Positions 2,852 to 49,459 of a stretch of 50,004 nt of DNA are shown here, one piece after another. The stretch's first letter is position 1. Every line of letters begins with the position of its first letter. The position numbers were made by a program, and so were the translations under genes. The notes under the pieces are model-generated. The model was given only the letters and a program-made list of their open reading frames with translations, was not told where the DNA came from and made no database searches. The DNA is taken from positions 1-50,004 of the IMG/VR virus record IMGVR_UViG_3300033159_000002; one strand, 5' to 3'.

Positions 2852-2972
2852 GTTCCCTCACTTTATATTATGCATAATGCTATATTTAAACGTTACGATT
2901 ATGCTAAGCAAAAAGTTTAAGCTTTAGTATCTCTGTTTTTTATTTTTTAGTTTTCTTTCCGTGTTATCTCTT

Positions 2973-3892: not shown

Positions 3893-3913
3893 AAAAAAGA
3901 ATCTGTACGCACA

Positions 3914-4183
3914 CTAATAAATAAAAACACGTTCTCCTTCCTTTAGTTCGCGTAAATATCTCCTCGCCTTCTCCCTAGCTAATTCGTCCGTTGATATCCT
4001 TATGAGGAAAGCTAACCTAGCCTTTGCTAGGTCGTCGGTCATTTCGATAATGTTGCATTCATGGTCATACGTATAGCCCCTCCTAAGATCCCTCATTATC
4101 ATGTCTGGTATTTCCCAGTCATGAGTAATTAATATACCTTCTCTTCGATAATAGCAGCTATTCCTCCCTTTGTAAATGTTCAT
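3914..4183 (-). CDS. Hypothetical protein
   Basis: Preceded by the conserved leaderless promoter TTTATTTTTTAGCTTTTCTCCCTACTTTTTCTT-ATG. Confidence 0.7.
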   Translation of the reverse strand: MNIYKGRNSCYYRREGILITHDWEIPDMIMRDLRRGYTYDHECNIIEMTDDLAKARLAFLIRISTDELAREKARRYLRELKEGERVFIY

Positions 4184-4239
4184 AAGAAAAAGTAGGGAGA
4201 AAAGCTAAAAAATAAAATTTAGCTTAGAACATGCTTAGC

Positions 4240-4656: not shown

Positions 4657-4704
4657 TGTAATAAAGGTCAACATAAAGGTTTAAAAATATACTAAAACGA
4701 TTAT

Positions 4705-9071: not shown

Positions 9072-9140
9072 AAATTTAGGACAGATTGTGATAAGAAAAA
9101 CCTAGAGCTAACTTTTCCTCACCCTTCATGGCGAGATTTG

Positions 9141-9873: not shown

Positions 9874-10884
9874 TCATATGATCACCTCAAGCTTTCTTAA
9901 CAAGGTTGGTTCTCCTAGCTCATGGCCGCACCTCGGACATTTTCCGCCGAACATTGACTTTATTTCTGATGGAGCTCTTACACCATAATAGTCCTGCCCT
10001 ACCTTTTCAAACCTATACAACTCATATCCGCAGCTTTTACATACGTACCTTATAGGCCCTAAAACCTCTACTATTTCCTTATATCTGTGCCTTATGATCG
10101 TTTCAGAAATATTCAGTGCTTTTGCTACTTCTTTTTGTGATTTCCTATTGTCCATTAGTATAGCCACCACATACACCGCAGCAGCGCTTAACGTTAAGTA
10201 ATTGCCGCTAATTAGCCCATTCTTATACATGTAGTCTATCAGCTCTGCAGCTTTTGTCCCTATAATCGGCGGTAGGTTTAATTTGTCAACTATTTTAGGG
10301 ATATATTTGGTCGGTATTATTGTAGGCCTGAATTCTGGGATAACTGTTTTTATCCTCTTCGTGGCCTGCCAGAACTCGCTTATGGAAACATCAAACTTTG
10401 CCTTAAATTCCTGCAAAGATATAGGCACATTATTCATTTGGCACGAATAGTATAATACTGCGGCAATTAGCGCATTTAAACTTATCCTCCTTTCTAACCC
10501 ATTCTCAATTAGCCTTCTTAGTATAAGTGCGGCAGTTTCTTTCACATGTTTTGGTAGATCTAGTTTTGATGCTTCTCTGTTAAGCCTTGAAAGGTATGTC
10601 ACTAATTTTTTCTCCCTAGTAGATGAGATCCTACTCCAGTTATGTAACCTTTGCATTTTCATTAGCTTTATCCTATCTTTTACCTTAGCATATCTTCCTA
10701 TCGTGGTTGAAAGGCCTTCATCGTGGATTTTTAGGGTCAGTGGGGATCCAGTCCTTTCCCGCTCTAAGACGTCCTCATGATTATATACTCTCCATTCTGG
10801 TCCTAGGTCTACAACTCTGTCCTCTATAACTTCCCCTGTCTCTGTGTCAACGTACTCTCCTCTTTCAGGGTCAAAGATTATCAT
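9874..10884 (-). CDS. tfb: Transcription initiation factor B (TFB/TFIIB) homologue with C-terminal Zn-ribbon fusion
   Basis: [38 protein letters not shown], two cyclin repeats, [25 protein letters not shown], then CKSC...CPRC. Confidence 0.92.
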
Positions 10885-11796: not shown

Positions 11797-11818
11797 CTTC
11801 TTCACCTCATGGTAATTC

Positions 11819-12130
11819 TTATTCGTCTTCCTCACCTTTTTGCGGTAAACTCCCCAGTTTACCGTCAAATTCTGATACCATTTGCCTCAAACTTAAATCT
11901 CTTTTCTCTTCAATTAATTGTAACTGTTTTGCGTAATAATGTAATCTTGTCCCGACTTCTGCTTCATCATACTCCATTTTGTTATGTAAGTAGAATTCTA
12001 AATTCTCTATAATCTCTTTCAATTCCTTGTAAATTCTTATTGCCGTCCTATCAATCCTAGTTAATCTCTGAGCCTTATAGGCTAGAGCATACGCTTTCTC
12101 TAAGTGCTGTTGCAAAGTAGTTTCAGCCAT
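11819..12130 (-). CDS. Hypothetical helical protein
   Basis: Operon member with RBS; its C-terminal KLGSLP is encoded by a motif copy. Confidence 0.7.
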   Translation of the reverse strand: MAETTLQQHLEKAYALAYKAQRLTRIDRTAIRIYKELKEIIENLEFYLHNKMEYDEAEVGTRLHYYAKQLQLIEEKRDLSLRQMVSEFDGKLGSLPQKGEEDE

Positions 12131-13800: not shown

Positions 13801-14133
13801 GTGAAAACAATGAAGAAAGAAAAGGTTACTATACTTACGAACGAGATAAAGGTACTCTGCCTACTATATAATGAGAAATTAACAAGGGCGGAAATATCAC
13901 AAAGGACAGGGTTAGATTATTCAAGTATAAGCTACATCACATTGAGGCTAGAATCACTAGGTCTCATTAGGATAGTAGGAACCAAGCATGTAAAGAGAGG
14001 ACCTTTAGAGGATGTATACGAAATCACTGAGAAGGGTATCCAGGAGATAAAACAGGAACTTGACAGAGTGTGGAATTATATGGAAACTTTACTACGAATA
14101 AAAGAAACCGCTACAGTTCCAGTAACAGGGTAA
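13801..14133 (+). CDS. Winged-HTH transcriptional regulator (MarR/PadR/ArsR-like)
   Basis: LTRAEISQRTGLDYSSISYITLRLESLGLI...YEITEKG. Confidence 0.85.
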   Translation: MKTMKKEKVTILTNEIKVLCLLYNEKLTRAEISQRTGLDYSSISYITLRLESLGLIRIVGTKHVKRGPLEDVYEITEKGIQEIKQELDRVWNYMETLLRIKETATVPVTG

Positions 14134-16754: not shown

Positions 16755-16927
16755 TTTTTATGGAGAGAAAGGAGGGCTTTTTCATTTGATCTCCTTCCTT
16801 GAGCAATAAGTATTGGGCCTCTGCTACTTACAAAAGAGGGGGTTAAAGGGGTTGAAAGCCCCTACCCTGGAAGAGTGGGATGAAGTCAGATCTGCTAGGT
16901 TAAGAGAACAAATGGAATCCTTACTTG

Positions 16928-16959
16928 TTTCCTAATCAGTTAAACAAAAAGTTTAAATA
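16928..16959 (+). promoter_or_regulatory. Conserved early-type promoter TTTCCTAA-N16-TTTAAA (copy 1 of 6)
   Basis: Also at 24506-24540(-), 24586-24617(+), 25138-25169(+), 25811-25842(+) and 27017-27048(-), with fixed 24-nt spacing. Confidence 0.85.
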
Positions 16960-16992
16960 TAATTCAACAAAAGGTATAATAGGGGTCAAAAG

Positions 16993-22418: not shown

Positions 22419-22465
22419 ATGAAGCAAAGAAGGTATAATAAGAAAAATGTTAGCATGAACATGAT

Positions 22466-23264: not shown

Positions 23265-23368
23265 TTTTCTTACTTCGCACTTTTGCTATATAATAGCACC
23301 TCGAACTTTTCCCTATTTTTCTCGCCCCTTTTTTGGTTTTATTAGCACGAAATTAAAACCACGTTAAG
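23265..23368 (+). repeat. Dispersed non-coding repeat, copy 2 (5'-truncated)
   Basis: TCGCACTTTTGCTATATAATAGCACCTCGAAC...GAAATTAAAACCACGTTAAG. Confidence 0.85.
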
Positions 23369-24470: not shown

Positions 24471-24654
24471 CTTTTTCATCCCCATAATAATGTTTGTTGA
24501 ACTAGGATTTAAACTTTTTGGTAAATAAGTTAGGAAACAACTTCCCTTCATTTTTAGCTGCGGTTCATGATATCCTCCCTTATTATTTCCTAACCAGTTG
24601 ACCAAAAAGTTTAAATACCACTTCAATAAATGGTATACGTGGGGGTAAAAAGAT

Positions 24655-30850: not shown

Positions 30851-31009
30851 CAGTTCGACTTAACGTCACCCTTTTTTCCTTAGTTCGCACTTTTGGCTAT
30901 ATATACCTCTTCGAACCTTTCCCTAGTTTTTATCTCCCTATTTCAGTTTCACCACTACGAAATTAAAACATGTTAAGGCTTTCCGTCCCCCTAACCCCTT
31001 TCTTTGTAA
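30851..31009 (+). repeat. Dispersed non-coding repeat, copy 3
   Basis: Aligns over ~160 bp with 38799-38958. Confidence 0.9.
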
Positions 31010-31101: not shown

Positions 31102-31138
31102 TTTATTTTTTAACTTATCCTCCTACTTCTTATTAATG
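31102..31138 (+). promoter_or_regulatory. Leaderless T-rich promoter class TTTATTTTTTA...CCTACTTCTT..ATG (representative)
   Basis: Similar sequences precede ATGs at 2973, 4183(-), 31136, 38317, 39420, 39886 and 44190. Confidence 0.8.
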
Positions 31139-31369
31139 ACATTTCGTAAAATAGATAACGGGGTAGAAATAAAATACGATAATGGTTATACCATCAAGAT
31201 TAAGGTTGAAGGAGATAAGCTTAAGCTGAGAGAAGAATATGAAGGTAGGCCGTACACTGACACGATGTTTTACCTCTCGCCAAGCCAAGCAATCGAAATA
31301 AAAAAGGCGTTGAAAGAAGCTAAAAGTGCAGATGATGTATTGAGGTTACTGCAGGGTGTTGTGAGATGA
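31136..31369 (+). CDS. Small hypothetical protein
   Basis: Conserved leaderless promoter. Confidence 0.75.
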   Translation: MTFRKIDNGVEIKYDNGYTIKIKVEGDKLKLREEYEGRPYTDTMFYLSPSQAIEIKKALKEAKSADDVLRLLQGVVR

Positions 31370-32244
31370 TTTACAGACCACGTTTTACATACGTTAAAGC
31401 TACTCATGAACAAGAAGAACGAGAAACAGCTTCCCCTAATCCACCAACACGTGAGCAAGAACTAAAATCTACAATATTTGGGCCTGAACGTGGACCTCTA
31501 GACCTATTGCAATTGAAACCCAAATTACCTATAACACCTCTCCCCCAGATTGCTTATCCATGGCACGAACCCAACCAGCCTGCATTTACACTTAGAGACC
31601 TGCAGCAATTGCTCAGCCACTTATCTAAAACACCTCTCCCTAGGTTGCCTACGCCTGAGGGAGAACCTAGAGAAGCACCATTCCCCAAACCACCAACACG
31701 TGAGCAAGAACCTGAACCAATAGCATCTATACCTGTGCCCATATGGAAAATACTATCACTTGTCCACATATACCCTGCTCCCAACCCACACCCTACAAAC
31801 CGTCCAATAGGTATAACAGTAATACAACCAACTCATCAAATACCATTAATGTCACCACCAACACGTGAACCAGAACATGAACTAACAGTAATTGTACCTA
31901 GAGACCTACAGCAATTACTTAACCAGTTACCCATACAACTCAGAGACATACTGCAAAACGCAAAATTCATAACCACCCTGCCTATCACCAACCCCCCAAG
32001 AGAACCGATCGTTAACCCACCAATACCTATAACGCCAATACCTATAATAAGACCTTCTGAGGGTGGATCGGAACGCGAACAAATAACATCTTTGCCTATC
32101 GAGCTCCCAGAGCCAACACCGCCTATAATATTTACACCTAGAGACCTACTGCAACCACTTACCTATTTCCTAGCACAAGAGCAGGAACTTAGACCACCTA
32201 CATTCACACCTCAGGAGCTATTACAAGCACATTTGACGTACTAA
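31366..32244 (+). CDS. Pro-rich low-complexity repeat protein (paralog family with the 32257 N-terminus and 37526)
   Basis: Repeated PPTREQE and FTxRDLQQLL motifs. Confidence 0.8.
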   Translation: MIYRPRFTYVKATHEQEERETASPNPPTREQELKSTIFGPERGPLDLLQLKPKLPITPLPQIAYPWHEPNQPAFTLRDLQQLLSHLSKTPLPRLPTPEGEPREAPFPKPPTREQEPEPIASIPVPIWKILSLVHIYPAPNPHPTNRPIGITVIQPTHQIPLMSPPTREPEHELTVIVPRDLQQLLNQLPIQLRDILQNAKFITTLPITNPPREPIVNPPIPITPIPIIRPSEGGSEREQITSLPIELPEPTPPIIFTPRDLLQPLTYFLAQEQELRPPTFTPQELLQAHLTY

Positions 32245-32256
32245 AGGTGATGTGAG

Positions 32257-35200
32257 GTGTTCTTCAGACCACATTTTACATATATTGAAGCAGCTACAGC
32301 AGAACAAACACAGGCTAGGGAAGCTGCTGCAAACGAAGAATGGAGGAAAAGGCTCCTCCTAAGACCTTCTGAGATTAAAATACAACACAAATCGATAACG
32401 TCTATACCTAGAGAAGTAATAATAAAGCTTACCCACCTTTCAGCACATGAGCAAGAACCAATCGTTAACCCGCCAGCACATATAACCCTAGTACGTATCA
32501 TAAGGCCTCGTGAGAGTGAGCAGGAACCAAACCCGCCAGCACATGAAAGACAAAGGCGTATCTATTTCTTTGGAGGATCTTCCCCTAATTTACCTACCGA
32601 TCTCCAGAAGCCTAGGCCGTTTATAACATATGTTCCTAATAGTTTTTGGGATCAAATTACCCGTAAGCAAGAAACAAACTCATCTGCTGTACACCACACA
32701 GAAGGGCTTAGTCCATGGGCACGTAGTCATATAGCAATGGCGCCTGATGAAAGAACTCCAACACCTAAACTAACCCCGTTCGACCAACTTCATATGGCAG
32801 CATCTGGTATCGAAGGGTCCCCAACACTGAATTCTGGTCCTGTAATACCACACATTTATAACCCTCCACCAATAATGCCAGTCAATTCCCCACCATCACA
32901 GCCACCAGCTCACAACAATGCTAGTCCTCCACCACCGCCTCCATCCAATAACACACCTTCGCAATCCAGTAACCCATTCGGCTTCTTCGGTTCTTTATTT
33001 GGTTCAGTCGTTAACGCTGTGACTAACGCAGTAAGTGGAGGTAATAATTCGGGAGGAGGTCAATCAAATAACCCGCTCACGTCGTTCCTCAGCTCTGCTG
33101 CAAATGCTGTGTCTAGCATGGCGAATGCTATTGGAAACGCAATAAGTCATGGCCAAATCGTTGCTAATGCGGCAACTTCTGGAGGCCAACCCAGTAACCC
33201 ATTCGGTGCGATAGGTTCGTTCTTTAGTTCAGTTGGTAATGATATTACCAATGCTGCATCCACATTTGTTAGTGATGTAACTAACGCAGTACAGAGTGCT
33301 GGGAGCGCAATAACTGGAGCATTGTCAACTGCTGGAAATGCAATAAAGAACGCTGCGTCCACAATTGGTAGCGACATAACTAACGCAGCAAAGGATGTTG
33401 GAAACGCAGTAACTAGCGCATTATCAACTGCTGGGAAAGCAGTAACTGGTGCACTGACGGATGTCGGGAACACAGTAATTGGAGCACTTTCAGCTGCGAA
33501 TAACGCAATACAGAACGCGTATAACTCCGTTTACGGAAACAAAATCCAGCAAGAGAAGCAGCAATTAGAGAACCAGCTCAAACAATTACAGCAGCAAGCG
33601 CAGCAAGAGTTAAACCAAATTCAACAGGAGAAACAGCAAGTACAAAACCAGTTGCAGCAAGTGCAGCAGCAAGCCCAACAAGAGTTAAACCAAATTCAAC
33701 AGGAGAAACAGCAAGTACAAAACCAGTTGCAGCAAGTGCAGCAGCAAGCCCAACAAGAGTTAAGTCAGCTTAACCAAGCCCAACAACAAATACAAAGTCA
33801 GTTGCAACAAGCCCAACAACAGGGTCAGCAGGAATTAATGCAAATAAGCCAACAGGAACAACAATTACAAGCTGAGTTACAACAAATACAACAATATGAA
33901 GCACAAGCCGAGCAGATGCTACAACAGAATCCTAACAATCCACAATTACAGAGCTACTTACAACAATTGCAGCAACAGCAACAACAAATACTGCAAAACT
34001 TAGCTCAGCTTAACCAGGCACAGCAGGAAGTACAGACGTACTTACAGCAAACTCAGCTTCAAGCACAGCAGGAGTTAATGCAAATTAACCAAGCCCAACA
34101 ACAAATACAAAGTCAGTTACAATTAGCTGAACAGCAAGCCCAACAAGACTTAGCTCAGCTTAACCAAGCCCAACAACAAGTACAGACGTACTTACAACAA
34201 GTGCAACAACAAGCCCAACAGGATCTGAACAAGCTTAACCAAGCCCAACAACAAATACAAAGTCAGTTGCAACAAGCCCAACAACAAATACAACAAGAGT
34301 TAGCGCAACTCAACAAACAACAACAAGGGGGTAACCCACTCCAACAGTTCTTTACTGACGTAGCTGATGTTTCAGCATTAATAGGCTATTACGCTACTGA
34401 AGGATTGGGCGGTGTCGGAGAGGAGTTGGCTCACCTTGTACAGGGTAAGGGTCTTGAGAATTTCAGCCAAGCGATTGCACAGTTCAATAAGGCAGGAGGG
34501 CAAAACATCGCTAAGATTGTAGGTGATGTCACGGAAGTCGCGTTACCTGCGATAATTACTGCGGTCGTTGCACCTGAACTACTACCCGCCGAGCTCATCG
34601 GCGAAGCATCATCGGTAGGTATCGGCGAAGTCGCTACAAAGCTCACCACAGGTCACTGGCAATCACTACAGCAAGTGTTACAGGAGGCAAATGAGGGTGG
34701 TGTGCTAGGCGCTATCGGCGAAGCTGGCGGTCTAGCATTAGAGTCTGGCCTAGCGAAGGGGGCAGGCGCATTAACGAAGTTGTTGACAGGTAGCGAAGAC
34801 TTGGCGTCGCAAGTGGCACACCTAACACCAGTGTGGAGAGCGGCAGGCGGTGCGTTAACTAACGTGGCACTACAGTTACCTTTCTCGCAGAACCCTGAGC
34901 AGCTGGCAATCGCTGGAATCATAGGCGGTTTGGCAGGTGGCTTAGGCCCTGGTATAGCGGGCAAATTGATGAGCAAGATAGACGAGATTAGAGGGACTGG
35001 TGGTGTAGCAGAACTAGAAACGCTCACATCACCCCTCACTGGCGAGACCACAGAAGCGTGGAAGATAACGCTACCCAGCGGTGACACGGTTTACTTAGTA
35101 CCAAAAACTACGTTCGGAGAAGGAGATATTAGCGACTTCGTAGACGCATACACAGGTAAAACTACTTTAGCGACTCACGTGACTCCATCGCGTGATTTCC

Positions 35201-36651
35201 TTAATGAGGTTGCTAATGGAGAAGCGCTTGTAAAGGTAGCAGGCGAACCGCCTAAAGATGAATGGGCGTTCCGAGAGTGGGGACATTTAAGGAATTTATA
35301 CCTCTCGCCTGGCGAAAGTGAGGACGTGGGAGTAGCGTTAACTGCATACTCAGGACTAAAGGACACAGAGCCTGGCATACCTGAGTTCAGCATAGGTCGT
35401 TCAAGTGTGAAAAACGTACTCTACAGATTCCTTCACCCCTTTGATAGAGGTGGTATAATAGGTATAAAGACTGATGCTGTTGATATTGAACCTCCTGAGG
35501 AGTTAGTCGATTATATTTTGGCTAAGAAAGCAGAGTATTTGGCGAACGTAGAATCTAACTGGTTGAAAAAATTCGCGAATAACTTCGCCATGAAGGAGTT
35601 ACTTAACGATCCAATATATGGCCCCATGTATAAAGAATACATAAACGAGCTGCTGACCTATAGTGCTGAGCACGGGGAACCTGTAATCGACCCTGAGGGG
35701 TTATTAGGCCTCACTCACGAGAGGCAGATAGAACTCGCTCCTGGTGCTAAGTTGAGAGGAACTGGAGAAGTGTATAATATATGGGTGAGACAGACACCAG
35801 AACTATTTAGAAACCTACCTGGGCCTCTGCGTGATATCCTCTCCGACTGGTCGAGATTCAAGTATGTCGGAGCAGAAATCATCCCTGGCGAGCCTCTTAA
35901 CTTGTTTGAGGACACAGAGAGTAATGAGACAGGAGGAGAGAGAATACCAGAATTGGGTGGTGAAGAGGGAGGAGAGAGAATACCAGAATTGGGTGGTGAA
36001 GAGGGAGGAGAGAGAATACCTAAGTTGCAAGGTGAGGAAGGAGGTGAAGAGGGAGGAGAGAGAATACTTAACGAGGGTGGGGAATGGAGGCTACCAGAAC
36101 CGATTTTACGGGAACCGTTCTGGATGGAACGTGAACCTCAACTAGAGAGTTCAGAGTTACCAACATATACTTCACCTCCACGGGACATTTATTCGTCCCC
36201 CTCACCAATTAGCAACCCACCACCTCCAATAATATCATCCCCATCGGTACCCACCATTAACCCACCATCTTCAACGTTGCCACCGATACCTCCTATTAAT
36301 TCACCGCCTTCGCCATCGCCAATAACATCACCGCCACCTTCACCCACCATTTCACCGCCTCCTCCAATCAACTCACCGCCCTCACCGCCATCCATCAGTT
36401 CACCACCGCCAATAAATTCTCCTCCACCACCCCCTATTATTAATATACCACCATCTGAGTACATACAGATAGAATCACAATCATCACCACCACCGCCAAT
36501 ATTCTCTTCGTCAACTGTTACCGAAAACGAATCGCCAATGCCGATGGGCCCACCACCAATATTGCCAGCGATAATGCCAGGTGGTTTTGGAGGAGGCGGA
36601 AACAACAACATGGAAATTAGCGGGATGGCAGGCGAGGTGATCTACCTGTGA
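32257..36651 (+). CDS. Giant multidomain protein (1464 aa): Pro-rich, amphipathic 11-mer repeats, Gln-rich coiled coil, hydrophobic G/A helices, globular (ART-like?) domain, Pro-rich tail
   Basis: Sequence composition; 75-bp tandem repeat near 33604-33763; 36-bp repeats near 35932-36066. Confidence 0.9.
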   Translation: MFFRPHFTYIEAATAEQTQAREAAANEEWRKRLLLRPSEIKIQHKSITSIPREVIIKLTHLSAHEQEPIVNPPAHITLVRIIRPRESEQEPNPPAHERQRRIYFFGGSSPNLPTDLQKPRPFITYVPNSFWDQITRKQETNSSAVHHTEGLSPWARSHIAMAPDERTPTPKLTPFDQLHMAASGIEGSPTLNSGPVIPHIYNPPPIMPVNSPPSQPPAHNNASPPPPPPSNNTPSQSSNPFGFFGSLFGSVVNAVTNAVSGGNNSGGGQSNNPLTSFLSSAANAVSSMANAIGNAISHGQIVANAATSGGQPSNPFGAIGSFFSSVGNDITNAASTFVSDVTNAVQSAGSAITGALSTAGNAIKNAASTIGSDITNAAKDVGNAVTSALSTAGKAVTGALTDVGNTVIGALSAANNAIQNAYNSVYGNKIQQEKQQLENQLKQLQQQAQQELNQIQQEKQQVQNQLQQVQQQAQQELNQIQQEKQQVQNQLQQVQQQAQQELSQLNQAQQQIQSQLQQAQQQGQQELMQISQQEQQLQAELQQIQQYEAQAEQMLQQNPNNPQLQSYLQQLQQQQQQILQNLAQLNQAQQEVQTYLQQTQLQAQQELMQINQAQQQIQSQLQLAEQQAQQDLAQLNQAQQQVQTYLQQVQQQAQQDLNKLNQAQQQIQSQLQQAQQQIQQELAQLNKQQQGGNPLQQFFTDVADVSALIGYYATEGLGGVGEELAHLVQGKGLENFSQAIAQFNKAGGQNIAKIVGDVTEVALPAIITAVVAPELLPAELIGEASSVGIGEVATKLTTGHWQSLQQVLQEANEGGVLGAIGEAGGLALESGLAKGAGALTKLLTGSEDLASQVAHLTPVWRAAGGALTNVALQLPFSQNPEQLAIAGIIGGLAGGLGPGIAGKLMSKIDEIRGTGGVAELETLTSPLTGETTEAWKITLPSGDTVYLVPKTTFGEGDISDFVDAYTGKTTLATHVTPSRDFLNEVANGEALVKVAGEPPKDEWAFREWGHLRNLYLSPGESEDVGVALTAYSGLKDTEPGIPEFSIGRSSVKNVLYRFLHPFDRGGIIGIKTDAVDIEPPEELVDYILAKKAEYLANVESNWLKKFANNFAMKELLNDPIYGPMYKEYINELLTYSAEHGEPVIDPEGLLGLTHERQIELAPGAKLRGTGEVYNIWVRQTPELFRNLPGPLRDILSDWSRFKYVGAEIIPGEPLNLFEDTESNETGGERIPELGGEEGGERIPELGGEEGGERIPKLQGEEGGEEGGERILNEGGEWRLPEPILREPFWMEREPQLESSELPTYTSPPRDIYSSPSPISNPPPPIISSPSVPTINPPSSTLPPIPPINSPPSPSPITSPPPSPTISPPPPINSPPSPPSISSPPPINSPPPPPIINIPPSEYIQIESQSSPPPPIFSSSTVTENESPMPMGPPPILPAIMPGGFGGGGNNNMEISGMAGEVIYL

Positions 36652-36818
36652 GAGGTGTAGGTTGGATACACATCCAAAGACCTACATTCACACCCATAGT
36701 GTTCTACGATCCTACAGGGAAAGTGATTTATATGCCGCTAAACGCGTACCAACCTGTAATACCCAAGTAACCACCGATATACCACGTCGTTCTAGACAAT
36801 AACTTACTTACGCTTTAA
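36648..36818 (+). pseudogene. Short paralog of the C-terminus of 37526..38257 with a premature TAA at 36768
   Basis: GWIHIQRPTFTPIVFYDPTGKVIY...VIPK*PPIYHVVL versus GWIYEQRPAFTPVVFYNPAKGTIY...IIPKSPPTYHVVV; GTG start with GAGGTGA RBS. Confidence 0.75.
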
Positions 36819-37179
36819 TATAAACAATTTTTGAAGGGTCTTTCACTATAAGTCTGTAGTGGATTTCGAGAATTAGGACGCCATAATGTACACCGTTTCT
36901 GAACCACACCTCAGTAACACCAGCTCTATCTCTTTTCTTCTTCTCAACTTTAACATATTTCTTCTCAATTACGAAATGTGTTTTCTTGCCTATAAAAACA
37001 TGGTATTTGTTCTTTTTCAACATAAAACTACATGGTTGCCATGTGCCGTTGACGAAACACTCTGTGATTATATCGACGGCGCGATCTAACTTCCTCTCAT
37101 AGCCAGCGTTCTTGCTCGTGTAGAGTATGCCCTCCTTCGGCTCCCATATGCCCACCAACTTCTTCAAGGTTCTTAGCAT
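36808..37179 (-). CDS. Basic hypothetical protein
   Basis: Own TTTAAATA promoter; inserted in the opposite orientation. Confidence 0.7.
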   Translation of the reverse strand: MLRTLKKLVGIWEPKEGILYTSKNAGYERKLDRAVDIITECFVNGTWQPCSFMLKKNKYHVFIGKKTHFVIEKKYVKVEKKKRDRAGVTEVWFRNGVHYGVLILEIHYRLIVKDPSKIVYIKA

Positions 37180-37525
37180 ATCTATTTATCAGAAGCAAAA
37201 TATTTAAACACATATGTGTGCCCTAGGAAGGACTTTGTTTGAATTTTTCTCAGTAAACTGGGGAGTTTATTCAAAATTTCTAACGGGAATATAAAGTCTA
37301 CGTCAGTAGTTGAAAACCCGCACATCTCTTATTCACCGTCACACCTCGTCGTGATATAGCCACCCATCTGGTGTGACTGTACTCATATTTACATACAAAA
37401 TATATAAACTTCACGGCTTATCAGAAACTGCTGACAACGGCTTTCTGCTCCCTTAAGTACCGAAAAACTTTAAAAAACCTAAACCCTGTTTTTAAATTTA
37501 TACTTGAGTAATATACTTATAAACG

Positions 37526-38257
37526 ATGAGGAAAATGCCTATTCATAGTACAAACCGTCCAATTATAACAGAAGCACGACCAACACAAGAAGTGCCATCG
37601 TGGTCTCCACCAAACCAGCCTATATTTACGCTTAAAGATTACCAGCAATTGTTTGGTAATTTACCCATAACACCTTTCAACCAATTGACTTTTTATTATA
37701 AAGATCACCAAGAATCGGAAAAACAGGAAACCAGCCCACCTATAATATTTACAAACCCGCCTACTCATAATGCAAACAATCTACCTACCTATAATATAAA
37801 CAGTTCAATAGGTACAGCAATAATACCACTACCGTCTCCCACAACTAACCCATCTATAACATTTGGAAATGTACCGTTACCCCTCTGGCTATGGAGAGAG
37901 CTCTACCAACAATTCTCGCCTCTCCCCAAACCATCAGCACATGAGCAAGAAACTAGCCCACCTGCATCTATACTTAAAGACCTACGACAATTGCTCAGCC
38001 ACTTACCTAAAACGCCTCTCCCCAAATTGCCTGAGGGAGAACCTAGAGAAGCACCTCTCGCTAAACAAGAACAGAAACCTAAGCAAACGGGAGGCATAGG
38101 TTGGATATACGAACAGAGACCAGCATTTACTCCAGTGGTTTTCTATAACCCTGCAAAAGGGACAATTTATACGCCACCGATCGCATTCCAACCCATTATA
38201 CCTAAATCGCCGCCTACATACCACGTGGTGGTAGAGACTAACTCTCTAACGTTTTAA
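37526..38257 (+). CDS. Pro-rich protein, paralog of 31366..32244
   Basis: Shared LLSHL.KTPLP.LP..EGEPREAP block. Confidence 0.8.
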   Translation: MRKMPIHSTNRPIITEARPTQEVPSWSPPNQPIFTLKDYQQLFGNLPITPFNQLTFYYKDHQESEKQETSPPIIFTNPPTHNANNLPTYNINSSIGTAIIPLPSPTTNPSITFGNVPLPLWLWRELYQQFSPLPKPSAHEQETSPPASILKDLRQLLSHLPKTPLPKLPEGEPREAPLAKQEQKPKQTGGIGWIYEQRPAFTPVVFYNPAKGTIYTPPIAFQPIIPKSPPTYHVVVETNSLTF

Positions 38258-38316
38258 AAAATAGTTTTCAAAAAAAGAGAGCTTTTATTTTTAAGTATTA
38301 ACTCCAAATTCTTCAT

Positions 38317-38793
38317 ATGCAGTATTTAGTCTTACTTTTGCTCATATTCGTCGCAATTGCTATCATTATAACGTTGCTACCTTACGTAAGCCTCATAATA
38401 ACGGATATTAACAACGTCAACGCACGTGTGTACACACTATACAATTCAACCACGTACATGAGCGGTACGTGGCTCGTGAACGGCAGCGAAATTCAGCAAG
38501 TCTCTACAACGCCAACAAACAAACTCGTAATTGAGGTAGCACAGGGCTCTTATGTTTATATATCAAACCAGACGTGGAGTGAAATGCTGTCGGATAACGG
38601 CGATAATGGGCCTATATTCTCCCCCTATGCGACGTTCAACCTCTCAGCTGGTTACTACAAGTATAACATACCTACGCAGGCTTTCGACTTCGAACAGCCC
38701 GTGTATAGCGTTTTATCAAGTCTGGCGTTCTTCTTCGCAGCTGCTGTAGTATTTATTCTCTTCATGGTGTTGTCGTATAGCCGTAGGAGGTGA
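38317..38793 (+). CDS. Two-TM membrane glycoprotein, candidate virion protein
   Basis: N- and C-terminal TM; NST, NGS, NQT and NLS sequons. Confidence 0.75.
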   Translation: MQYLVLLLLIFVAIAIIITLLPYVSLIITDINNVNARVYTLYNSTTYMSGTWLVNGSEIQQVSTTPTNKLVIEVAQGSYVYISNQTWSEMLSDNGDNGPIFSPYATFNLSAGYYKYNIPTQAFDFEQPVYSVLSSLAFFFAAAVVFILFMVLSYSRRR

Positions 38794-38798
38794 ACTGG

Positions 38799-38958
38799 CA
38801 GTTCGACTTAACGTCACCCTTTTTTCCTTACCTCGCACTTTTGCTATATAATAGCACCTCGAACCTTTCCCTAGTTTTTATCCCCCTTTTCTAGTTTCAC
38901 CAGCACGAAATTAAAACCGTGTTAAAGCTTTCCGCCCCCTTAACCCCCTCTTTTGTAA
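38799..38958 (+). repeat. Dispersed non-coding repeat, copy 4
   Basis: See copies 1-3. Confidence 0.9.
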
Positions 38959-38998
38959 CGTATTATATTTTTAAATATGTTCGTATACGTATATCTTG

Positions 38999-39166
38999 AT
39001 GGCATACAAGGAACATACCCATACCCACTCTGAAAGGTTGCTAGCCTGGAGAAGGGAATTTGCTGAAGCTGCAAAGATGTGCAGTGCAAAGGTTAAGGGT
39101 TTGCCAAAGGGAGAGAAACTAAGAGCGTTCAGAGCATGTATGAGAGAAACCTTAAGAAAGAAATAA
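38999..39166 (+). CDS. Small basic protein (55 aa, MAYKEHTHTHSERLLAWRREFAEAAKMCSAKVKGLPKGEKLRAFRACMRETLRKK), candidate nucleoprotein; absent from the ORF track
   Basis: TATATTTTTAAA exactly 23 nt upstream, as for the capsid candidate; K/R-rich with two Cys. Confidence 0.75.
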   Translation: MAYKEHTHTHSERLLAWRREFAEAAKMCSAKVKGLPKGEKLRAFRACMRETLRKK

Positions 39167-39167
39167 C

Positions 39168-39344
39168 ATGTTCGGGCTCACGCGAAAAGAGCCACCAATC
39201 GACATCATCGAAAGCGATGAGAATACCATAAAACTGCACACAATAAACGGTACAGTGAACGCGAAGAAGATCCTCAGCGTCAGCGGTAAACATGTGATCT
39301 ATATAGACCAATACGGAAATGTAAGAGAAGCGCTCCTAAAGTAA
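39168..39344 (+). CDS. Small protein (58 aa, MFGLTRKEPPIDII...); absent from the ORF track
   Basis: Starts 1 nt after the preceding stop; followed by a T-tract. Confidence 0.6.
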   Translation: MFGLTRKEPPIDIIESDENTIKLHTINGTVNAKKILSVSGKHVIYIDQYGNVREALLK

Positions 39345-39419
39345 AATTTATTTTTTGTGGGGGTACCCCCACACCTCCATTGCTAATTTATTTTTTAATT
39401 CCTTTTCCTATTTCTTCTT

Positions 39420-39809
39420 ATGCTAACAACACTGGGTAAGTTCGCCTTAGCTTTCATTATAGCCTTTACTATCATAAACACTATGGTTCAGGTCGACTTA
39501 TCCTCAGTAGGTTACCCGCAAATACCGTATTTCACGACAATTGTAAACCCACAAGCGTTTACAGCTATCATCCACAGCACTGCGGTTACGAACATGCCGT
39601 TTGCCTTTATCCTCTATGCCGTAGGGCTCCTTATCTTCAACGCGTTAATTAATTTCGTTGCTGGCATACCTATCGTGTTTTATGAAATGGCTGCAATTAG
39701 CGGGAACCCTGGTCTTATCATAGGTGCTTTGTTAGTAGGTGCAATGCTACAAGCGATGGCATGGCTGTACTTGCTAGAGGTGCTGGCACAGTTCTTCTTC
39801 CCAGTCTAA
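39420..39809 (+). CDS. 3-TM membrane protein
   Basis: Hydrophobic; conserved leaderless promoter. Confidence 0.75.
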   Translation: MLTTLGKFALAFIIAFTIINTMVQVDLSSVGYPQIPYFTTIVNPQAFTAIIHSTAVTNMPFAFILYAVGLLIFNALINFVAGIPIVFYEMAAISGNPGLIIGALLVGAMLQAMAWLYLLEVLAQFFFPV

Positions 39810-39885
39810 TTATGGGGACACCCCCAATGTGGGGGAACACCCCCAATGCTAATTTATTTTTTAACTTATTCTCCTACTTCTTCTT

Positions 39886-40470
39886 ATGAAAGTCCTAGTT
39901 GTAGACCTCGATAACACTCTATTTAACACTCAAGCAAGGTATAACGCATGCTTAGCGGAACAAGGTGTCGCGTCTTTAGACTCCCTCCACGGGGAGGCTA
40001 GGAGGAAGTTCTGGGAGTGTTACCAGTCACCACGGTACATGGACTTCGACATCCCTAACAAGGGCGTACTTGACACAGTAAAAAAGGCGAAAGAAAAGGG
40101 TTGGGTCGTTATACTGCTGACTGGAAGGAACGGTGAGACACAGAGAGAAAAAACACTCGAACAACTACAGAAATTTAACGTGCCATATGACTACTTGATA
40201 ATGAGGAACCCCAATGACTATAGGAAAGAGGTAGAGTATAAGCGGGAAATACTTAACGGTCTGAAGGGGTTAGGGGATGTTATACTCATAGACGACAACC
40301 CGGAGGTAAGAAAGTTAGTATCAAAAGCGTTCCCTCCAGACGAAAGTCCAACAATTGATGAGGCAAGGGATCAGGGTGAACTAAACGTTATGTTTTACAC
40401 CAAATACCCACCTGTTATAACTAAGGGGGTGAGCAGAGTTGAAGATGAAGAAGTTTTTGATCTTGAGTAG
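39886..40470 (+). CDS. HAD-superfamily phosphatase (PNKP 3'-phosphatase/acid phosphatase-like)
   Basis: VVDLDNT (motif I), LLTGR (II), K (III), IDD (IV). Confidence 0.88.
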   Translation: MKVLVVDLDNTLFNTQARYNACLAEQGVASLDSLHGEARRKFWECYQSPRYMDFDIPNKGVLDTVKKAKEKGWVVILLTGRNGETQREKTLEQLQKFNVPYDYLIMRNPNDYRKEVEYKREILNGLKGLGDVILIDDNPEVRKLVSKAFPPDESPTIDEARDQGELNVMFYTKYPPVITKGVSRVEDEEVFDLE

Positions 40471-43400
40471 TTTACTTCTTTTCATACTTCTCATGCCTTT
40501 AGAAGTGTATGCAGTACAGTCCTTTCTGACGTTTTACGTTAACGTTATGGACTACGGTACTGTGCTCATGTTGCAGAACCAGAGTAACGTGTTAACAATT
40601 TACGAGATCCCCTCCTCTTTCTCCTCAGTTCCATCATTTCAGGGTGTGCAGACTACGGGGAAGGCGTTGGAGGCTGTGGAAAACGTCACGCTGAAGAGCG
40701 GTGAAGTGGCACTGGTACATGAATACGGAGTATCGGGATTCTCGACACAAAACTTCCTTTACCAACAAGTGAACGTACCCAGAATCGTTACACACTCAAA
40801 TTCCACTACGTCCTATTATTCGTCTTCTACGATTTATGTAACACCAGATCAAGGATACCAGTTACAGTTCACTCCATGGTTCGGTATTCAAAACCAGCCT
40901 GTGGATAGTGTCGAGTCAACAGGTTGGAAAGTATTTCCATATTGGCAAAACGGCGAACTGGTGGTGAACAGTACTGGAGCAAGTACTTATGGTCAATACA
41001 TTGCTTGGAAATATTCTCCAATATCAAACGTCATCAACATCACCATTCATATAACATCATTCCCAGTACAAAGTAATAATCCTGGTATTCTTATCGCCTC
41101 ACCTAACGTAGGAGACCAAACAAACATTGCTAATAATGGTTTTTACGCGTTGACAGTTAACTTCTATGACAACAAGATAGCGTTCCATTCTCCAACATCT
41201 GGTTTCATAATACTTGACTCTTCTCTTCCTCAACCTAACCCTAATTATCCGTTCACTTTCAGCGTCATCCTGACAGAGAACAGTGCTGGAAACGTTACAG
41301 TACAGAGCGTATACATCAACTCAACGGCTTACACAGTAAATGTAAACACTCCTTTCCCGTGGAGCCAGATAGGCTACGTGGGGATAACACCAGATATGGG
41401 TAACTTATTCTACGTCTCCTACTTCAGTGTCTCTCCAGCACCTTACGGTGGTGTTGAACAGTTCGTGAACAACGTGGAGTCAACATCATGGAAAGTGTTA
41501 CCTTATTGGGAAAACGGCGAACTGGTGGTGAACAGTACTGGAGCAAGTATTTATGGACAGTACATTGATTGGAGATATTCGCCGATAAGTAACACCATCA
41601 ACATAACGATCCACATAACATCGTACCCAACACAGAATGGTAATCCTGGTATCGTTGTCTACTCACCTACCGTAGGAGACCAATCATATGACGGTGTTAC
41701 TGGTTTTTATGCGTTATTAGTTGACTTCTACGGCAACACGATATGGTTCCATTCCCCAACATCTAGTTACACGCAACTTTACACTTCTCTGCCTCAACCT
41801 AACCCCAACTACCCCTTTACCTTCAGCGTAATACTTACGGAGAATTCGGCGGGTAATGTTACCGTACAGAGCGTATACATCAATTCAACAGCATACCCCG
41901 TAAATGTAAACACTCCTTTCCCGTGGAATCAGATAGGCTACGTAGGGATCGATGCCGAACAGTCTAACTTATTCTACGTCTCCTATTTCGGCGTCTCTCC
42001 TTTCCAGTATGGTGTAGTCAAATACACGGTCAACTCAATATCATTACCTTCAATGCCCGATACTTCTTCAGCCACCGTTCTGATTTCTCAGCTCTCCAAC
42101 GGCTCTTACGCCATCCTCGGCGTGTACAACGGGACGTGGCATGAGCTTAACCTACCGTTTGCCAATCCTAATGGAAAGTTCACAGTTACGTTCAACCCAG
42201 TGGGCCCAGTGAACATAACGTTGAAGTCCTCCAACGTCTTATCTTACGGAGCTTTATTCTCTCCAGGTAACGGCGTGTTGTTAGAGGCTCAAAACGCTAT
42301 ACCTCCGTCAAACCCGTCGAATTGGGCACCGTTAGGCTATGTGGGTACCAACGGAGAGGTAGGAGGAGGTGTTGATTGGGCTTCGCCACAATTTACTCCA
42401 GCTACGCTCAACAGTATAAACTATTACCAAGGTGGTACAATAGCGACGACTGACTGGGGTACCACGAACTTCACTTATTACTCTGCATCAATTAATCAGC
42501 ATCTAAACGGACAGATGAATTACGTTACTGTTGGTATAGGTTTCACATCAGGTTGGGCTAATGCGCCCTCTGGCTATTACCCTTTCCAAAACGGCTTTAT
42601 CGACATGGTATACATAGAAAATAACAGTATTGCGACGTCACAAACACCTCCTAACGTCTCTTCGATGTTGTTCTTCTTCGACCCCACATACATCACGCAA
42701 CAAGGTCAATACATAAACCCCTTCACGAACCAGACCTACCAGCTGACTGGTTCCCTAACTAGGGAAGTTAACGATATCGGCGTCATTACGTTCCTCGATC
42801 CAAAAGTCACAAACCCTGTGATTTATGTCCCACCGTTCACAGAGGTAATCGTGAGGAACTCTACTAGCTCACAAATATTCATAAATTACGAGACGTTTCC
42901 TTACCAGACTGCAACGGTACCACCTGGTAATTACCAGATCACGGTCATCCTACTTTACACAGCTTATTCCTTCGTTTTAATAAACTGGCAAGGCTGGAAC
43001 GTGACTATTTACGAAAACGGACAACCAATGATAGTAAACGACCCGATAACACAACAAATACAGCCCTTCGACACACAAGGGCTCTTATCCGCACAAATTG
43101 TGGCAAACCCCAATACGAAAGTGTTGACCATATACCTTCAACCGCTCTCCTCTGGCGTAGGTACTTATTCACCTAAGGAGATAGCGTTCCCGAAACCCGC
43201 ACCGCAGTTAATACTCCCGTTAACCCAACAAACGCCGTTCAGTCTGTCAACACTTACGGTAAGCGGTATAGTTACAGTAGCAATGGTTTTAGCAGTTGTG
43301 ATCGCGTTAGCCAGAGCTAACCAAGATCTGCTCGCAAGTATAGCTGCAGGAGGTGCAGTAGTCGCAGTGGTGGGTATTATCATACACCTCATGCCAATAA

Positions 43401-43471
43401 TCTTCATAGGGTCAGTCATGGTTATAATATCTACAACATATAGGTTTGCGAGGAGGAGCAGCCAGACATGA
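40439..43471 (+). CDS. Large surface glycoprotein, candidate receptor-binding/adsorption protein with a duplicated beta-sandwich domain
   Basis: Signal peptide; ~185-aa internal duplication (~40910-41440 and ~41475-42000); many sequons; 3 C-terminal TM. Confidence 0.8.
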   Translation: MKMKKFLILSSLLLFILLMPLEVYAVQSFLTFYVNVMDYGTVLMLQNQSNVLTIYEIPSSFSSVPSFQGVQTTGKALEAVENVTLKSGEVALVHEYGVSGFSTQNFLYQQVNVPRIVTHSNSTTSYYSSSTIYVTPDQGYQLQFTPWFGIQNQPVDSVESTGWKVFPYWQNGELVVNSTGASTYGQYIAWKYSPISNVINITIHITSFPVQSNNPGILIASPNVGDQTNIANNGFYALTVNFYDNKIAFHSPTSGFIILDSSLPQPNPNYPFTFSVILTENSAGNVTVQSVYINSTAYTVNVNTPFPWSQIGYVGITPDMGNLFYVSYFSVSPAPYGGVEQFVNNVESTSWKVLPYWENGELVVNSTGASIYGQYIDWRYSPISNTINITIHITSYPTQNGNPGIVVYSPTVGDQSYDGVTGFYALLVDFYGNTIWFHSPTSSYTQLYTSLPQPNPNYPFTFSVILTENSAGNVTVQSVYINSTAYPVNVNTPFPWNQIGYVGIDAEQSNLFYVSYFGVSPFQYGVVKYTVNSISLPSMPDTSSATVLISQLSNGSYAILGVYNGTWHELNLPFANPNGKFTVTFNPVGPVNITLKSSNVLSYGALFSPGNGVLLEAQNAIPPSNPSNWAPLGYVGTNGEVGGGVDWASPQFTPATLNSINYYQGGTIATTDWGTTNFTYYSASINQHLNGQMNYVTVGIGFTSGWANAPSGYYPFQNGFIDMVYIENNSIATSQTPPNVSSMLFFFDPTYITQQGQYINPFTNQTYQLTGSLTREVNDIGVITFLDPKVTNPVIYVPPFTEVIVRNSTSSQIFINYETFPYQTATVPPGNYQITVILLYTAYSFVLINWQGWNVTIYENGQPMIVNDPITQQIQPFDTQGLLSAQIVANPNTKVLTIYLQPLSSGVGTYSPKEIAFPKPAPQLILPLTQQTPFSLSTLTVSGIVTVAMVLAVVIALARANQDLLASIAAGGAVVAVVGIIIHLMPIIFIGSVMVIISTTYRFARRSSQT

Positions 43472-43737
43472 AGTTCATCACATATGTTATCCTAATATTT
43501 ATTATAGGCATTACAGCAGCAGTACTCAACTTAATTGAGGGCATCTATTTCGGCCTTGCGGTTCCGACACTCAACAGCGTGAAAATAGGTAATGTGAGTG
43601 CGAAAATGCCCAGCAACCCTATACCGTTCGCCAGTAATATAGTCGACGTCTTGGTATTATTAATAGGTATGCTCATCTTCATGATACTCATATACATTGT
43701 TAAAATACTGAGAGAGAGGAGTCCTTATGGGCCGTGA
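43468..43737 (+). CDS. Two-helix hydrophobic hairpin protein, candidate minor capsid protein
   Basis: Same architecture as 4240..4656, with an NVS sequon in the loop. Confidence 0.55.
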   Translation: MKFITYVILIFIIGITAAVLNLIEGIYFGLAVPTLNSVKIGNVSAKMPSNPIPFASNIVDVLVLLIGMLIFMILIYIVKILRERSPYGP

Positions 43738-43813
43738 TAAAATAAACGACAAACCTCGCCCTTTTAGGGCGGGGTAAAAAAAGCATAAACGTCTCTTTTC
43801 TTTCCCTCGTCCT

Positions 43814-44008
43814 TTAGGGCGAGGAGGAGTCAGAACCTCCTATAACCCTTGCTAATTCTGATTTTTCCTTAGAGATAAAGCCCCTTGCAAGGGCCTGCTT
43901 CATTAAAAAAACTATAGCTTCTTGTCTTGATTCCCATCCTTCAGCTTTCCACATACTATCAAATTGTTGAAGGATGCGTTCATCTATATTCAAGCTTATT
44001 CTAGCCAT
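43814..44008 (-). CDS. RHH (NikR/CopG-like) regulator
   Basis: MARISLNIDERILQQFD...SRQEAI. Confidence 0.85.
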   Translation of the reverse strand: MARISLNIDERILQQFDSMWKAEGWESRQEAIVFLMKQALARGFISKEKSELARVIGGSDSSSP

Positions 44009-44189
44009 TGTGTATAATGTATGTTTGATATAGTATATAAAGCTTATGACATACACTTTTGTATTACAGCCTACAACTCCTAAATTATTTTATAAAAATA
44101 GGGATTAAGGGAGACAAACCTCACCCTTCCATGGTAAGGAGGAGGTCAGCTTATTTTTTATTTTTTAGCTTTTCCTCCTACTTCTTCTT

Positions 44190-44822
44190 ATGAAAAGGTT
44201 ATTATTACTGCTTTTAGTCCCTCTCATGGCGTCTCTGTTAGTAGCAGCAACTACAGGTGGCGCTGTTTTAGACTGGTCAGACGGTAGTGCCGTTGTGACA
44301 ATACAGCCACTTTCAGAGACAGTCATAGACGGTTATGTTGTTAACGCTTTTTATAACGGCTCAAATCAAGTAGTCCTCTTAGCGGAACCTTACTACCAGG
44401 GGCAAAACTTGCAACAGGTTACGTTTTCACTTTACAACTTTTACACACACCAGCTAATCGGTAATTATACATTGGAAGACAACTACACCGTGGTGACAGT
44501 ACCTTCCAATATAACTGTTATTTACATTTACTTCGACAGTCAACAGTTTGGGCCGTTTTACATAGCGACAAACGGCGGCAATTATGCACCGCCTCTTCTC
44601 GACCAAATGCTGATGTATGCTATTCCGTTGTCTTCTGTGGCTTTATTCGGGCTTAGAGCGGGTCTGAGAAACGTCGGGCTAGGATTAATAGTCTCATCGA
44701 TATTTACAACGGCAGAAATGGTAGCACTAGGGGTTTCTAACGCGTGGTTATATGCGATCCCCACTCTCGAGGTAATGTTTGCCATTATACTGTTGTGGCA
44801 CAGCGTCCAAACGTCGGGCTAA
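44190..44822 (+). CDS. Membrane glycoprotein with signal peptide and C-terminal TMs
   Basis: Signal peptide, sequons, 3 TM. Confidence 0.8.
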   Translation: MKRLLLLLLVPLMASLLVAATTGGAVLDWSDGSAVVTIQPLSETVIDGYVVNAFYNGSNQVVLLAEPYYQGQNLQQVTFSLYNFYTHQLIGNYTLEDNYTVVTVPSNITVIYIYFDSQQFGPFYIATNGGNYAPPLLDQMLMYAIPLSSVALFGLRAGLRNVGLGLIVSSIFTTAEMVALGVSNAWLYAIPTLEVMFAIILLWHSVQTSG

Positions 44823-44853
44823 CATTTTTCTTATTTAACCATTTTTTTCTTTC

Positions 44854-48930: not shown

Positions 48931-49255
48931 GTTGATTATTACGCTCTCGATAGACTTTATAGCATTAGCACTCCAACTCTACCTCATCAACAAGGACACC
49001 CCGATTTACCTTGACGCCCTCATTACAATTTTTCTGGCAATCTTTAATTTCGCTTCATACCTAAACGGTTTGATATATGTGGCTGGTGAGAACGAAACAA
49101 AGATAAACAACTCGACAGTTATAATAACGCCCGTTTATAAGCCTGACCCCTTCGCTCCCCTTTACATGATAGGGTTCGTCATAACGATAGTGTCGGCTTT
49201 CCTGCTAATAATAAAAATATTTACAAAAAAAGGAAGTTTTGAATTATTCCCTTAA
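48917..49255 (+). CDS. 3-TM membrane protein
   Basis: Hydrophobic segments. Confidence 0.7.
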   Translation: MLGDELIITLSIDFIALALQLYLINKDTPIYLDALITIFLAIFNFASYLNGLIYVAGENETKINNSTVIITPVYKPDPFAPLYMIGFVITIVSAFLLIIKIFTKKGSFELFP

Positions 49256-49459
49256 TGTCTTTTCTAAAAGTGCACCACAATATGTGGTATCTAAATGCCT
49301 TTGCAGAAAAAACACGTTTTTAAACTTATGGCCACATATCGGGCATTTTTTCTCCTTTATCGAGCCTAGGATGTCAATATTCTTCTTCTCAGCATTTAGG
49401 ATTAACCATCTCATTCCGAGTAACTTTTTATATTTCGAGACCGCGTAAAGCTCTTTCAT
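49244..49459 (-). CDS. C2H2-type zinc-finger protein
   Basis: CPICGHKFKNVFFLQRHL...C. Confidence 0.8.
   Translation of the reverse strand: MKELYAVSKYKKLLGMRWLILNAEKKNIDILGSIKEKKCPICGHKFKNVFFLQRHLDTTYCGALLEKTLRE

Follow-up and report, generated by a model that had tools for sequence, protein, structure and literature searches.

The virus record IMGVR_UViG_3300033159_000002 is a complete genome of 50,004 bp (hereafter the window, meaning the whole stretch of DNA analysed). It encodes a homologue of the archaeal transcription factor TFB and carries repeated T-rich boxes, here termed class A, at a fixed distance in front of genes that include membrane and secreted proteins. A 127-nucleotide (nt) direct terminal repeat identifies the record as a circular assembly. 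The closest named relatives are the Sulfolobales viruses YNP1 and YNP2, and the large spindle-shaped viruses SMV1, SMV3, SMV4, ATSV and ATV2 are more remote. A sequence-only reading of the window had proposed that non-canonical leaderless promoters precede its structural genes, and that these promoters may be the targets of the viral TFB.

The class A element and the genes behind it

The window holds six exact copies of the class A box, the 11-mer TTTATTTTTTA, and YNP1 and YNP2 have five each. The sites that had been listed before the start codons at 31136(+), 39420(+), 39886(+), 44190(+) and 4183(-) are all present as TTTATTTTTTA(A/G) followed by a pyrimidine tract and ATG. Looser copies that had been placed before 2973 and 38317 are present as well, and one before 3892(-), absent from that list, is added here. 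Protein lengths below are in amino acids (aa) and TM denotes transmembrane.

31102..31135, plus strand: class A promoter; ATG at 31136; heads an operon of 77-, 292- and 1464-aa genes; kept before the orthologs in five relatives
39387..39419, plus strand: class A promoter; ATG at 39420; 129-aa membrane protein with four TM segments; conserved in relatives
39853..39885, plus strand: class A promoter; ATG at 39886; operon of a HAD phosphatase (194 aa), a 1010-aa protein and an 89-aa TM protein
44157..44189, plus strand: class A promoter; ATG at 44190; 210-aa signal-peptide/TM protein; conserved in relatives
4184..4216, minus strand: class A promoter; ATG at 4183; 89-aa gene directly 3' of the capsid gene
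2939..2972, plus strand: class A box with a diverged proximal element; ATG at 2973; 123-aa gene, in a divergent intergenic region
38284..38316, plus strand: variant box TTTATTTTTAAG; ATG at 38317; 158-aa signal/TM protein
3893..3925, minus strand: variant box TTTATTTATTAG; ATG at 3892; 103-aa TM protein

The 1464-aa repeat protein, which ends its operon, has weak tape-measure-like matches, and the 1010-aa protein is conserved in large spindle-shaped viruses. Small soluble proteins are also among the class A products. The label "structural" is only partly supported: the products include one capsid-protein homologue, several membrane or secreted proteins of unassigned role and the HAD phosphatase, so that it is plausible for the module as a whole and not gene by gene.

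In all three genomes every copy of TTTATTTTTTA lies 22-24 nt 5' of an ATG or GTG that opens an open reading frame (6/6 in the window, 5/5 in YNP1 and 5/5 in YNP2), and the same spacing is found at 44 of 45 unique sites from 16 related loci. By chance a start codon would be expected at this distance for about one copy in ten, and the association of box and start codon is therefore not a chance one. The 36-nt class A consensus has four matches with three or fewer mismatches in the window and none in 100 shuffles. A position weight matrix from the five core sites scores them at 42-48 bits, against a best of 18.5 in 20 shuffled genomes; the looser sites before 2973 and 38317 score 17-19.

Aligned on the box, the consensus reads TTTATTTTTTA-R-Y-T-Y-T-T-Y-C-T-C-C-T-A-Y-T-T-Y-T-T-C-T-T, followed by ATG. 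With the A of ATG as +1, the element has an invariant TTTA at about -33 to -30. Next to it, a T-rich octamer resembling a TATA box, TTTTTTAR, spans about -29 to -22 (44/45 sites), and the pyrimidine tract that follows (YCTCCTAYTTCTTCTT) is poor in G and has CCTA near -13 to -10. Positions 20 and 21 from the box are C in 37 and 43 of the 45 sites, C is found at -13 in 42/44, and G is almost missing from -36 to -1. A canonical leaderless promoter of the same virus, at 26995(-), has TTTAAATA spanning -29 to -22, with AAAAAG directly 5' of it at -35 to -30. Its TATA box has the same spacing as the class A octamer, and on this comparison TTTTTTAR would be the TATA equivalent and TTTA would occupy the place of the transcription factor B recognition element (BRE). 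The six bases 5' of the TATA equivalent are W-W-T-T-T-A and not purine-rich. The lack of a purine-rich BRE, which had been claimed for all these promoters, thus stands for the core class and is less clear for the TTTTTCTTAT class described below, where TAACA or CTAGG lies upstream. The class A upstream tracts contain no Shine-Dalgarno sequence. Since G is missing from the tract, the messages would be leaderless, and transcription should start at or beside the ATG.

Some other readings of the tract were rejected. A 5' leader with a Shine-Dalgarno function does not fit, because the tract is practically devoid of G and its CCTCC corresponds in sense to the anti-Shine-Dalgarno sequence instead of pairing with it. 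Read on the opposite strand, a purine-rich sequence followed by an A-rich box resembles a BRE/TATA promoter facing away from the gene; such a promoter would run antisense into co-directional upstream genes and leaves the fixed distance to the ATG unexplained. A hairpin enclosing the box (GGAGGA...TCCTCC) occurs at just two sites, 31136 and 44190, and is not kept in the orthologs. An Rfam scan of the whole window returned no family, and a scan of it for bacterial-type promoters and terminators, irrelevant to archaea, remained at shuffle level.

The element is kept before the orthologs of the 77-, 129-, 194-, 210-, 89-, 123-, 158- and 103-aa genes in YNP1 and YNP2 as well as a dozen metagenomic contigs, amid intergenic DNA that diverges. 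This conservation bears on the idea that the sites are alike simply because a promoter cassette was recently duplicated or spread by gene conversion, without special function. The five core copies in the window are indeed 71-90% identical over 41 nt, and contigs from RNA and DNA libraries cross over between motif copies. However, the same element precedes orthologs in YNP2-like genomes, where protein identity is no more than 52-87%, and the box is invariant where its flanks are scrambled, which leaves this explanation very improbable.

Archaeal termination uses oligo-T tracts, and the T-rich box might be mainly the terminator of an upstream co-directional gene, with the promoter-like spacing secondary, or have a dual role. 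Five sites do lie shortly 3' of a co-directional gene, two of them preceded by GC-rich hairpins such as GTGGGGGTACCCCCAC. Termination would not explain the fixed spacing to the next start codon, however, and the box at 2939, in a divergent intergenic region, has no upstream co-directional gene to terminate. Moreover, the stretch 5' of the box is not conserved, and some relatives have just 5 nt between the preceding stop codon and the box. A primary role in termination is, on this balance, improbable.

Canonical promoters and the timing of the class A genes

Genes in the 13-30 kb region are preceded by TTTAAATA with AAAAAG or a similar sequence in front of it. An upstream TTTCCTAAC element is common to several of them, and GGGGT/GGTGA leaders are found on most, as in the following example.

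16922..16973, plus strand: canonical early promoter (TTTCCTAAC..AAAAAG-TTTAAATA with a Shine-Dalgarno leader); other copies at 24580, 25132 and 25805

Among host sequences, five Sulfolobales genomes (8.8 Mb in total) contain the box followed by N20-22 and ATG four times, with one occurrence of a reversed control. The window contains six in 50 kb, making the configuration about 260-fold rarer per base in the five genomes. The earlier view that these sites are unlike host promoters is borne out, as they match neither the canonical BRE/TATA early promoters of this virus nor the content of Sulfolobales genomes. Positional fixity, conservation before orthologs amid diverging flanks, the constancy of CC and of C at -13, the lack of G and the rarity in Sulfolobales together make it highly probable that the class A boxes function as promoters, and the elements are almost certainly a virus-specific, BRE-less, leaderless promoter type. 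No published description of this class was found in the literature searched.

The canonical BRE-TATA leaderless promoter of Sulfolobales shares with class A a box rich in T and A whose centre lies about 26 nt before the start, a start at or next to the ATG and the lack of a Shine-Dalgarno sequence on the first genes of operons. It differs in that class A has the invariant TTTA at the BRE position instead of a purine-rich sequence, and a proximal region that is a conserved G-free pyrimidine tract and not merely A/T-rich. The promoter element of the rudiviruses SIRV1/2 (a GTC motif after the TATA box, with the host activator Sta1) is different in sequence; SIRV promoters keep BRE and TATA, and their known activator is host-encoded. 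Genes gp38-41 and gp53 of YNP1 (SYV1) have been assigned to an early/anti-defence set on the basis of a BRE/TATA regulatory sequence (PMC11065993). That class of archaeal-virus sequence also consists of a virus-specific consensus repeated before many genes of one genome, but it combines a strong BRE and TATA with inverted repeats and marks early genes, whereas class A has neither BRE nor inverted repeats. Its counterpart in the window is the TTTCCTAAC..AAAAAGTTTAAATA promoters and not the T-rich boxes. The YNP1 genes correspond to the 13-30 kb module of the window, in the other half of the genome, and none of them is an ortholog of a class A gene. The location of this early set in another module, together with the class A products (capsid homologue, TM/secreted and giant proteins), suggests that the class A boxes probably have a non-early role in the virion module, and late timing of the class A genes is inferred.

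The window also contains nine copies of a palindrome, (G)TAAACTCCCCAGTTTAC, at 3381, 11847, 15758, 16026, 16392, 23737, 25678, 48074 and 48296. They lie mostly at or just before the starts of small early-region genes, one being at the start of a ribbon-helix-helix (RHH) gene, 11605-11868(-), upstream of the viral TFB. The palindrome looks like the operator of a dimeric repressor.

The viral TFB as a candidate reader of the boxes

The viral TFB that had been presumed is confirmed as a full-length open reading frame.

9874..10884, minus strand: viral TFB, 336 aa, TFB2-like, with two cyclin repeats, a Cys-less N-terminal ribbon and an insertion of about 55 aa with CxxC...CPxC

Both cyclin-fold repeats are recognisable, with PF00382 matched twice (E 4e-16 and 1e-11). 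Residues 86-275 align to Pyrococcus woesei TFBc (1d3u, 1ais; E 8e-29), and the helices of an AlphaFold2 model have a pLDDT of about 80-90. All viral-type TFBs have lost the four cysteines of the N-terminal zinc ribbon, as the first CxxC is missing and DTETG stands in place of the second, and the match of the window protein to the zinc-ribbon family PF08271 (26.7 bits) is under the cut-off of 29. Another feature of the viral type is the insertion of some 55 residues with CxxC...CPxC straight after the last (BRE-reading) helix. It is modelled as a small beta-rich domain (pLDDT 71-88), and Pfam gave only sub-threshold generic zinc-ribbon matches to it. The recognition helix of the helix-turn-helix (HTH), ITEVTIRNRY in cellular proteins, is altered in the viral type with arginine and tyrosine invariant. 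In solved TFBc-TBP-DNA complexes this last helix sits in the major groove of the BRE, and the new zinc-ribbon domain should thus, as modelled, sit beside the DNA just 5' of the TATA box, where the invariant TTTA lies.

The nearest cellular relatives of the protein, at 52-63% identity, belong to one Sulfolobales paralog. In Sulfolobus acidocaldarius the matching gene is close to TBP and adjoins an Rpc34-type gene (TFE-beta), which we take to be Saci_1342. As TFB2 is Saci_1341 in the published numbering, this neighbourhood identifies the cellular match as TFB2, a paralog of low abundance with a transcript that is induced ahead of the G1/S transition. Judged by sequence, the viral TFB is derived from host TFB2. 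Compared with the cellular TFB1, TFB2 and TFB3 of Sulfolobales it is full-length and of TFB2 type, and its lineage differs in the loss of the N-terminal zinc cysteines and the gain of a C-terminal zinc ribbon, an architecture for which no description was found in the literature searched. A scan of a genome collection with the TFB alignment gave mainly generic archaeal TFBs. TFBs of viruses have been noted in ARV2, ARV3, MRV1, SSRV1, YNP1 and YNP2, and their role has not been established (PMC9501531). The rudiviral TFBs, from Italian rudiviruses, are only 25-32% identical to that of the window.

All three complete genomes with a TFB of this type contain the box (6, 5 and 5 copies). In SMV1, SMV3, SMV4, ATSV and ATV2, which lack the factor, the 11-mer is found 0, 0, 0, 2 and 0 times, which is chance level (reversed control 3), so that among the large spindle-shaped viruses checked the promoter consensus is enriched only in genomes with the factor. 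The different arrangement at the structural genes of the TFB-less SMV1, described below, also speaks for the link. The favoured proposal is the following sequence of events. Host TBP and TFB would act at canonical AAAAAG-TTTAAATA promoters to express the early genes, including the operon of the viral TFB; this gene lies in a minus-strand gene array whose upstream promoters (at 13113, and at the RHH gene 11868 with its palindromic operator) look canonical. The viral TFB, derived from TFB2 and with its new zinc ribbon by the BRE-reading helix, would then join host TBP and RNA polymerase, and the complex would assemble on the BRE-less T-rich promoters and turn on the late module. The T-rich boxes would drive leaderless transcripts of the virion/membrane-protein module, from about 31 kb across the circle junction to 4.7 kb. 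We would give this explanation as a whole, clade-specific T-rich core promoters read by the viral TFB as a late switch, a probability of roughly 0.4. Dependence of the class A promoters on the viral TFB, argued from single-clade co-occurrence and plausibility, is put forward only tentatively. It is doubtful that the factor, with its relocated zinc ribbon, specifically reads TTTA-TTTTTTAR / CCTA and so redirects host RNA polymerase to the virion module.

Several observations weigh against this proposal. The co-occurrence of TFB and motif belongs to one clade and is effectively one evolutionary event. There is no covariation of the box with the TFB recognition helix, as the box is invariant while the helices differ. 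The 21 kb examined of a plasmid-like ParA/ParB contig that encodes a 60%-identical TFB yielded no class A element, and TFB-encoding rudiviruses show no enrichment of the box over control. The TATA-like part of class A is close to the Sulfolobus box A consensus, so that host TBP and TFB1 might suffice. The lost N-terminal zinc cysteines could impair recruitment of RNA polymerase. Furthermore, two RNA libraries are represented by assembled contigs, carrying neither ends, strand nor levels, and all that these metatranscriptome contigs show is the presence of relatives of the region. As regards the plasmid-like contig (metagenome contigs L111 and L112), the TFB has the same C-terminal ribbon and lies beside ParA, ParB, helicase and MoxR/VWA genes and an IS605-type element, and the contig resembles a plasmid rather than a spindle-shaped virus.

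The strongest of the other explanations is that host TBP with TFB1 or TFB2 reads the boxes, with timing or strength set by another DNA-binding protein on the tract or box, or by none if the promoters are constitutive, whether weak or strong. The viral TFB would then have a different job, for example general support of viral transcription or a TFB2-like manipulation of the cell cycle. The near-canonical TATA-like part, the lack of covariation between box and helix, and the contig that has a TFB of the same type and no motif seen all favour this view. Candidate regulators are also encoded by the virus, namely the RHH protein (11605-11868(-)), a winged helix-turn-helix (wHTH) protein of MarR/TrmB type (13801-14133(+)) and a weak C2H2 finger (49244-49459(-)). 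A precedent lies in SMV1, which lacks a TFB and controls its structural genes through a palindromic operator beside the TATA box: these genes have TTTTTTAA-type boxes, an A-rich BRE-type upstream sequence and the palindrome CAAACA(G/T)(C/A)TGTTTG. Nevertheless, the conserved class A element is asymmetric and non-palindromic and a poor fit to dimeric RHH or wHTH regulators, the invariant TTTA fills the exact BRE position, and the configuration is nearly missing from host genomes. Reading by host factors deserves serious weight, short of an even chance. The SMV1 palindrome lies right beside the TATA box at gp05, gp06, gp09, gp10, gp13, gp14, gp16, gp24 and gp25, and with the TTTTTTAA-type box forms a separate virus-specific promoter/operator class. 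The wHTH protein of the window has a weak, sub-threshold match to TFIIE-alpha (17.5 bits, cut-off 22.9).

Polymerase recruitment by TFB/TFIIB needs an intact zinc ribbon, and the viral TFB might accordingly be a decoy for host shut-off that binds TBP-DNA and recruits RNA polymerase poorly, with the T-rich promoters unrelated to it. The deleted first CxxC, the change of the second to DTETG in all viral-type TFBs and the below-cut-off Pfam match of the ribbon are in keeping with such a role. However, the Cys-less ribbon is highly conserved in sequence among viral-type TFBs and is still modelled as a beta-ribbon, and the B-reader/linker is as conserved as in TFB2, which a pure decoy would not need. 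A decoy is consequently an unlikely function.

The late switch proposed here shares its logic with phage sigma cascades, T4 late promoters and the TATT late promoters of beta- and gamma-herpesviruses, which use a viral TBP mimic. Each combines early promoters of host type, a general initiation factor of which the virus encodes its own copy, and a distinct, minimal late promoter without the usual upstream element. The phage and herpesvirus systems use other machinery, and dependence on the factor is proven there, whereas the present proposal is drawn from sequence. Archaeal viruses encode no RNA polymerase. This genome pairs a sharply defined, host-atypical promoter class with a rearranged TFB2-like factor, and these matched cis and trans parts suit the established Sulfolobus in vitro transcription system. 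If the proposal is true, a general transcription factor encoded by a virus would for the first time have been shown to change the promoter class in archaea, and a TFB2-type factor would for the first time have been given a promoter specificity, shedding light on the unstudied host paralog TFB2, and the system would be an archaeal equivalent of the phage sigma cascade. If the link to TFB is false, a BRE-independent promoter type would still have been defined.

Class B and C boxes and repeated sequences

Two further boxes have an ATTTTT core at about -30 to -25 in common with class A. The arrangement TATATTTTTAAA-N23-ATG (class B), earlier noted as common to 4656(-) and 38999(+), is found at both, and is kept in relatives as TATATTTTT(T)AA about 24 nt 5' of the capsid-protein homologue and the basic 55-aa gene. 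The sequence TTTTTCTTAT (class C) lies 19 nt before 9071(-), 22418(-) and 44854(+), in the last two cases inside an identical CTAACATTTTTCTTATT, as had been reported, and is conserved before the orthologs in relatives.

4680..4691, minus strand: class B box TATATTTTTAAA; 23 nt before ATG 4656 of the capsid-protein homologue (phrog_16261, virion structural protein)
38964..38998, plus strand: class B box TATATTTTTAAA with a conserved CGTATACGTATATC element; ATG at 38999; basic 55-aa gene
44825..44834, plus strand: class C box TTTTTCTTAT; 19 nt before ATG 44854; 246-aa gene, then an AAA ATPase
22438..22447, minus strand: class C box TTTTTCTTAT; 19 nt before ATG 22418
9091..9100, minus strand: class C box TTTTTCTTAT; 19 nt before ATG 9071; 202-aa gene

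The position of the class B box suggests that the capsid-protein gene starts at ATG 4656 and not at the upstream ATG 4674, which is the choice of the longest open reading frame. Contig depth in the two RNA libraries is by far highest in the bin 39060-39259, beside the basic 55-aa gene, which is weak evidence. The CGTATACGTATATC element (38976-38998), between the class B box and the ATG of this gene, hardly varies among six relatives; it includes the palindrome GTATAC, might serve as an operator and may loosely resemble the published aCcr1-box.

Repeats are also found within and between genes. The 1464-aa and 1010-aa genes contain long in-frame tandem and dispersed repeats (33234-34321 and 35920-36084; 40901-41764), and metagenome contigs hold length variants of the 1010-aa gene with skips of about 570-590 nt. 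An intergenic repeat of about 103 nt, containing GCTATATAATAGC, has three copies (23265-23367, 30875-30977 and 38823-38925) that are 68-85% identical, two of them sitting shortly 5' of T-rich promoters. One contig from a DNA run joins 38917 to 44150, suggesting variants or recombination near these repeats. Adjoining the capsid gene, about 2 kb of non-coding DNA (4700-6760) is made up of some 50 head-to-tail units of 38 nt with conserved TTGCTNGTGTGCA and TTATTGA blocks. The same array is present in relatives (e.g. L011), and it could serve as an origin of iteron type or as an array to which proteins bind.

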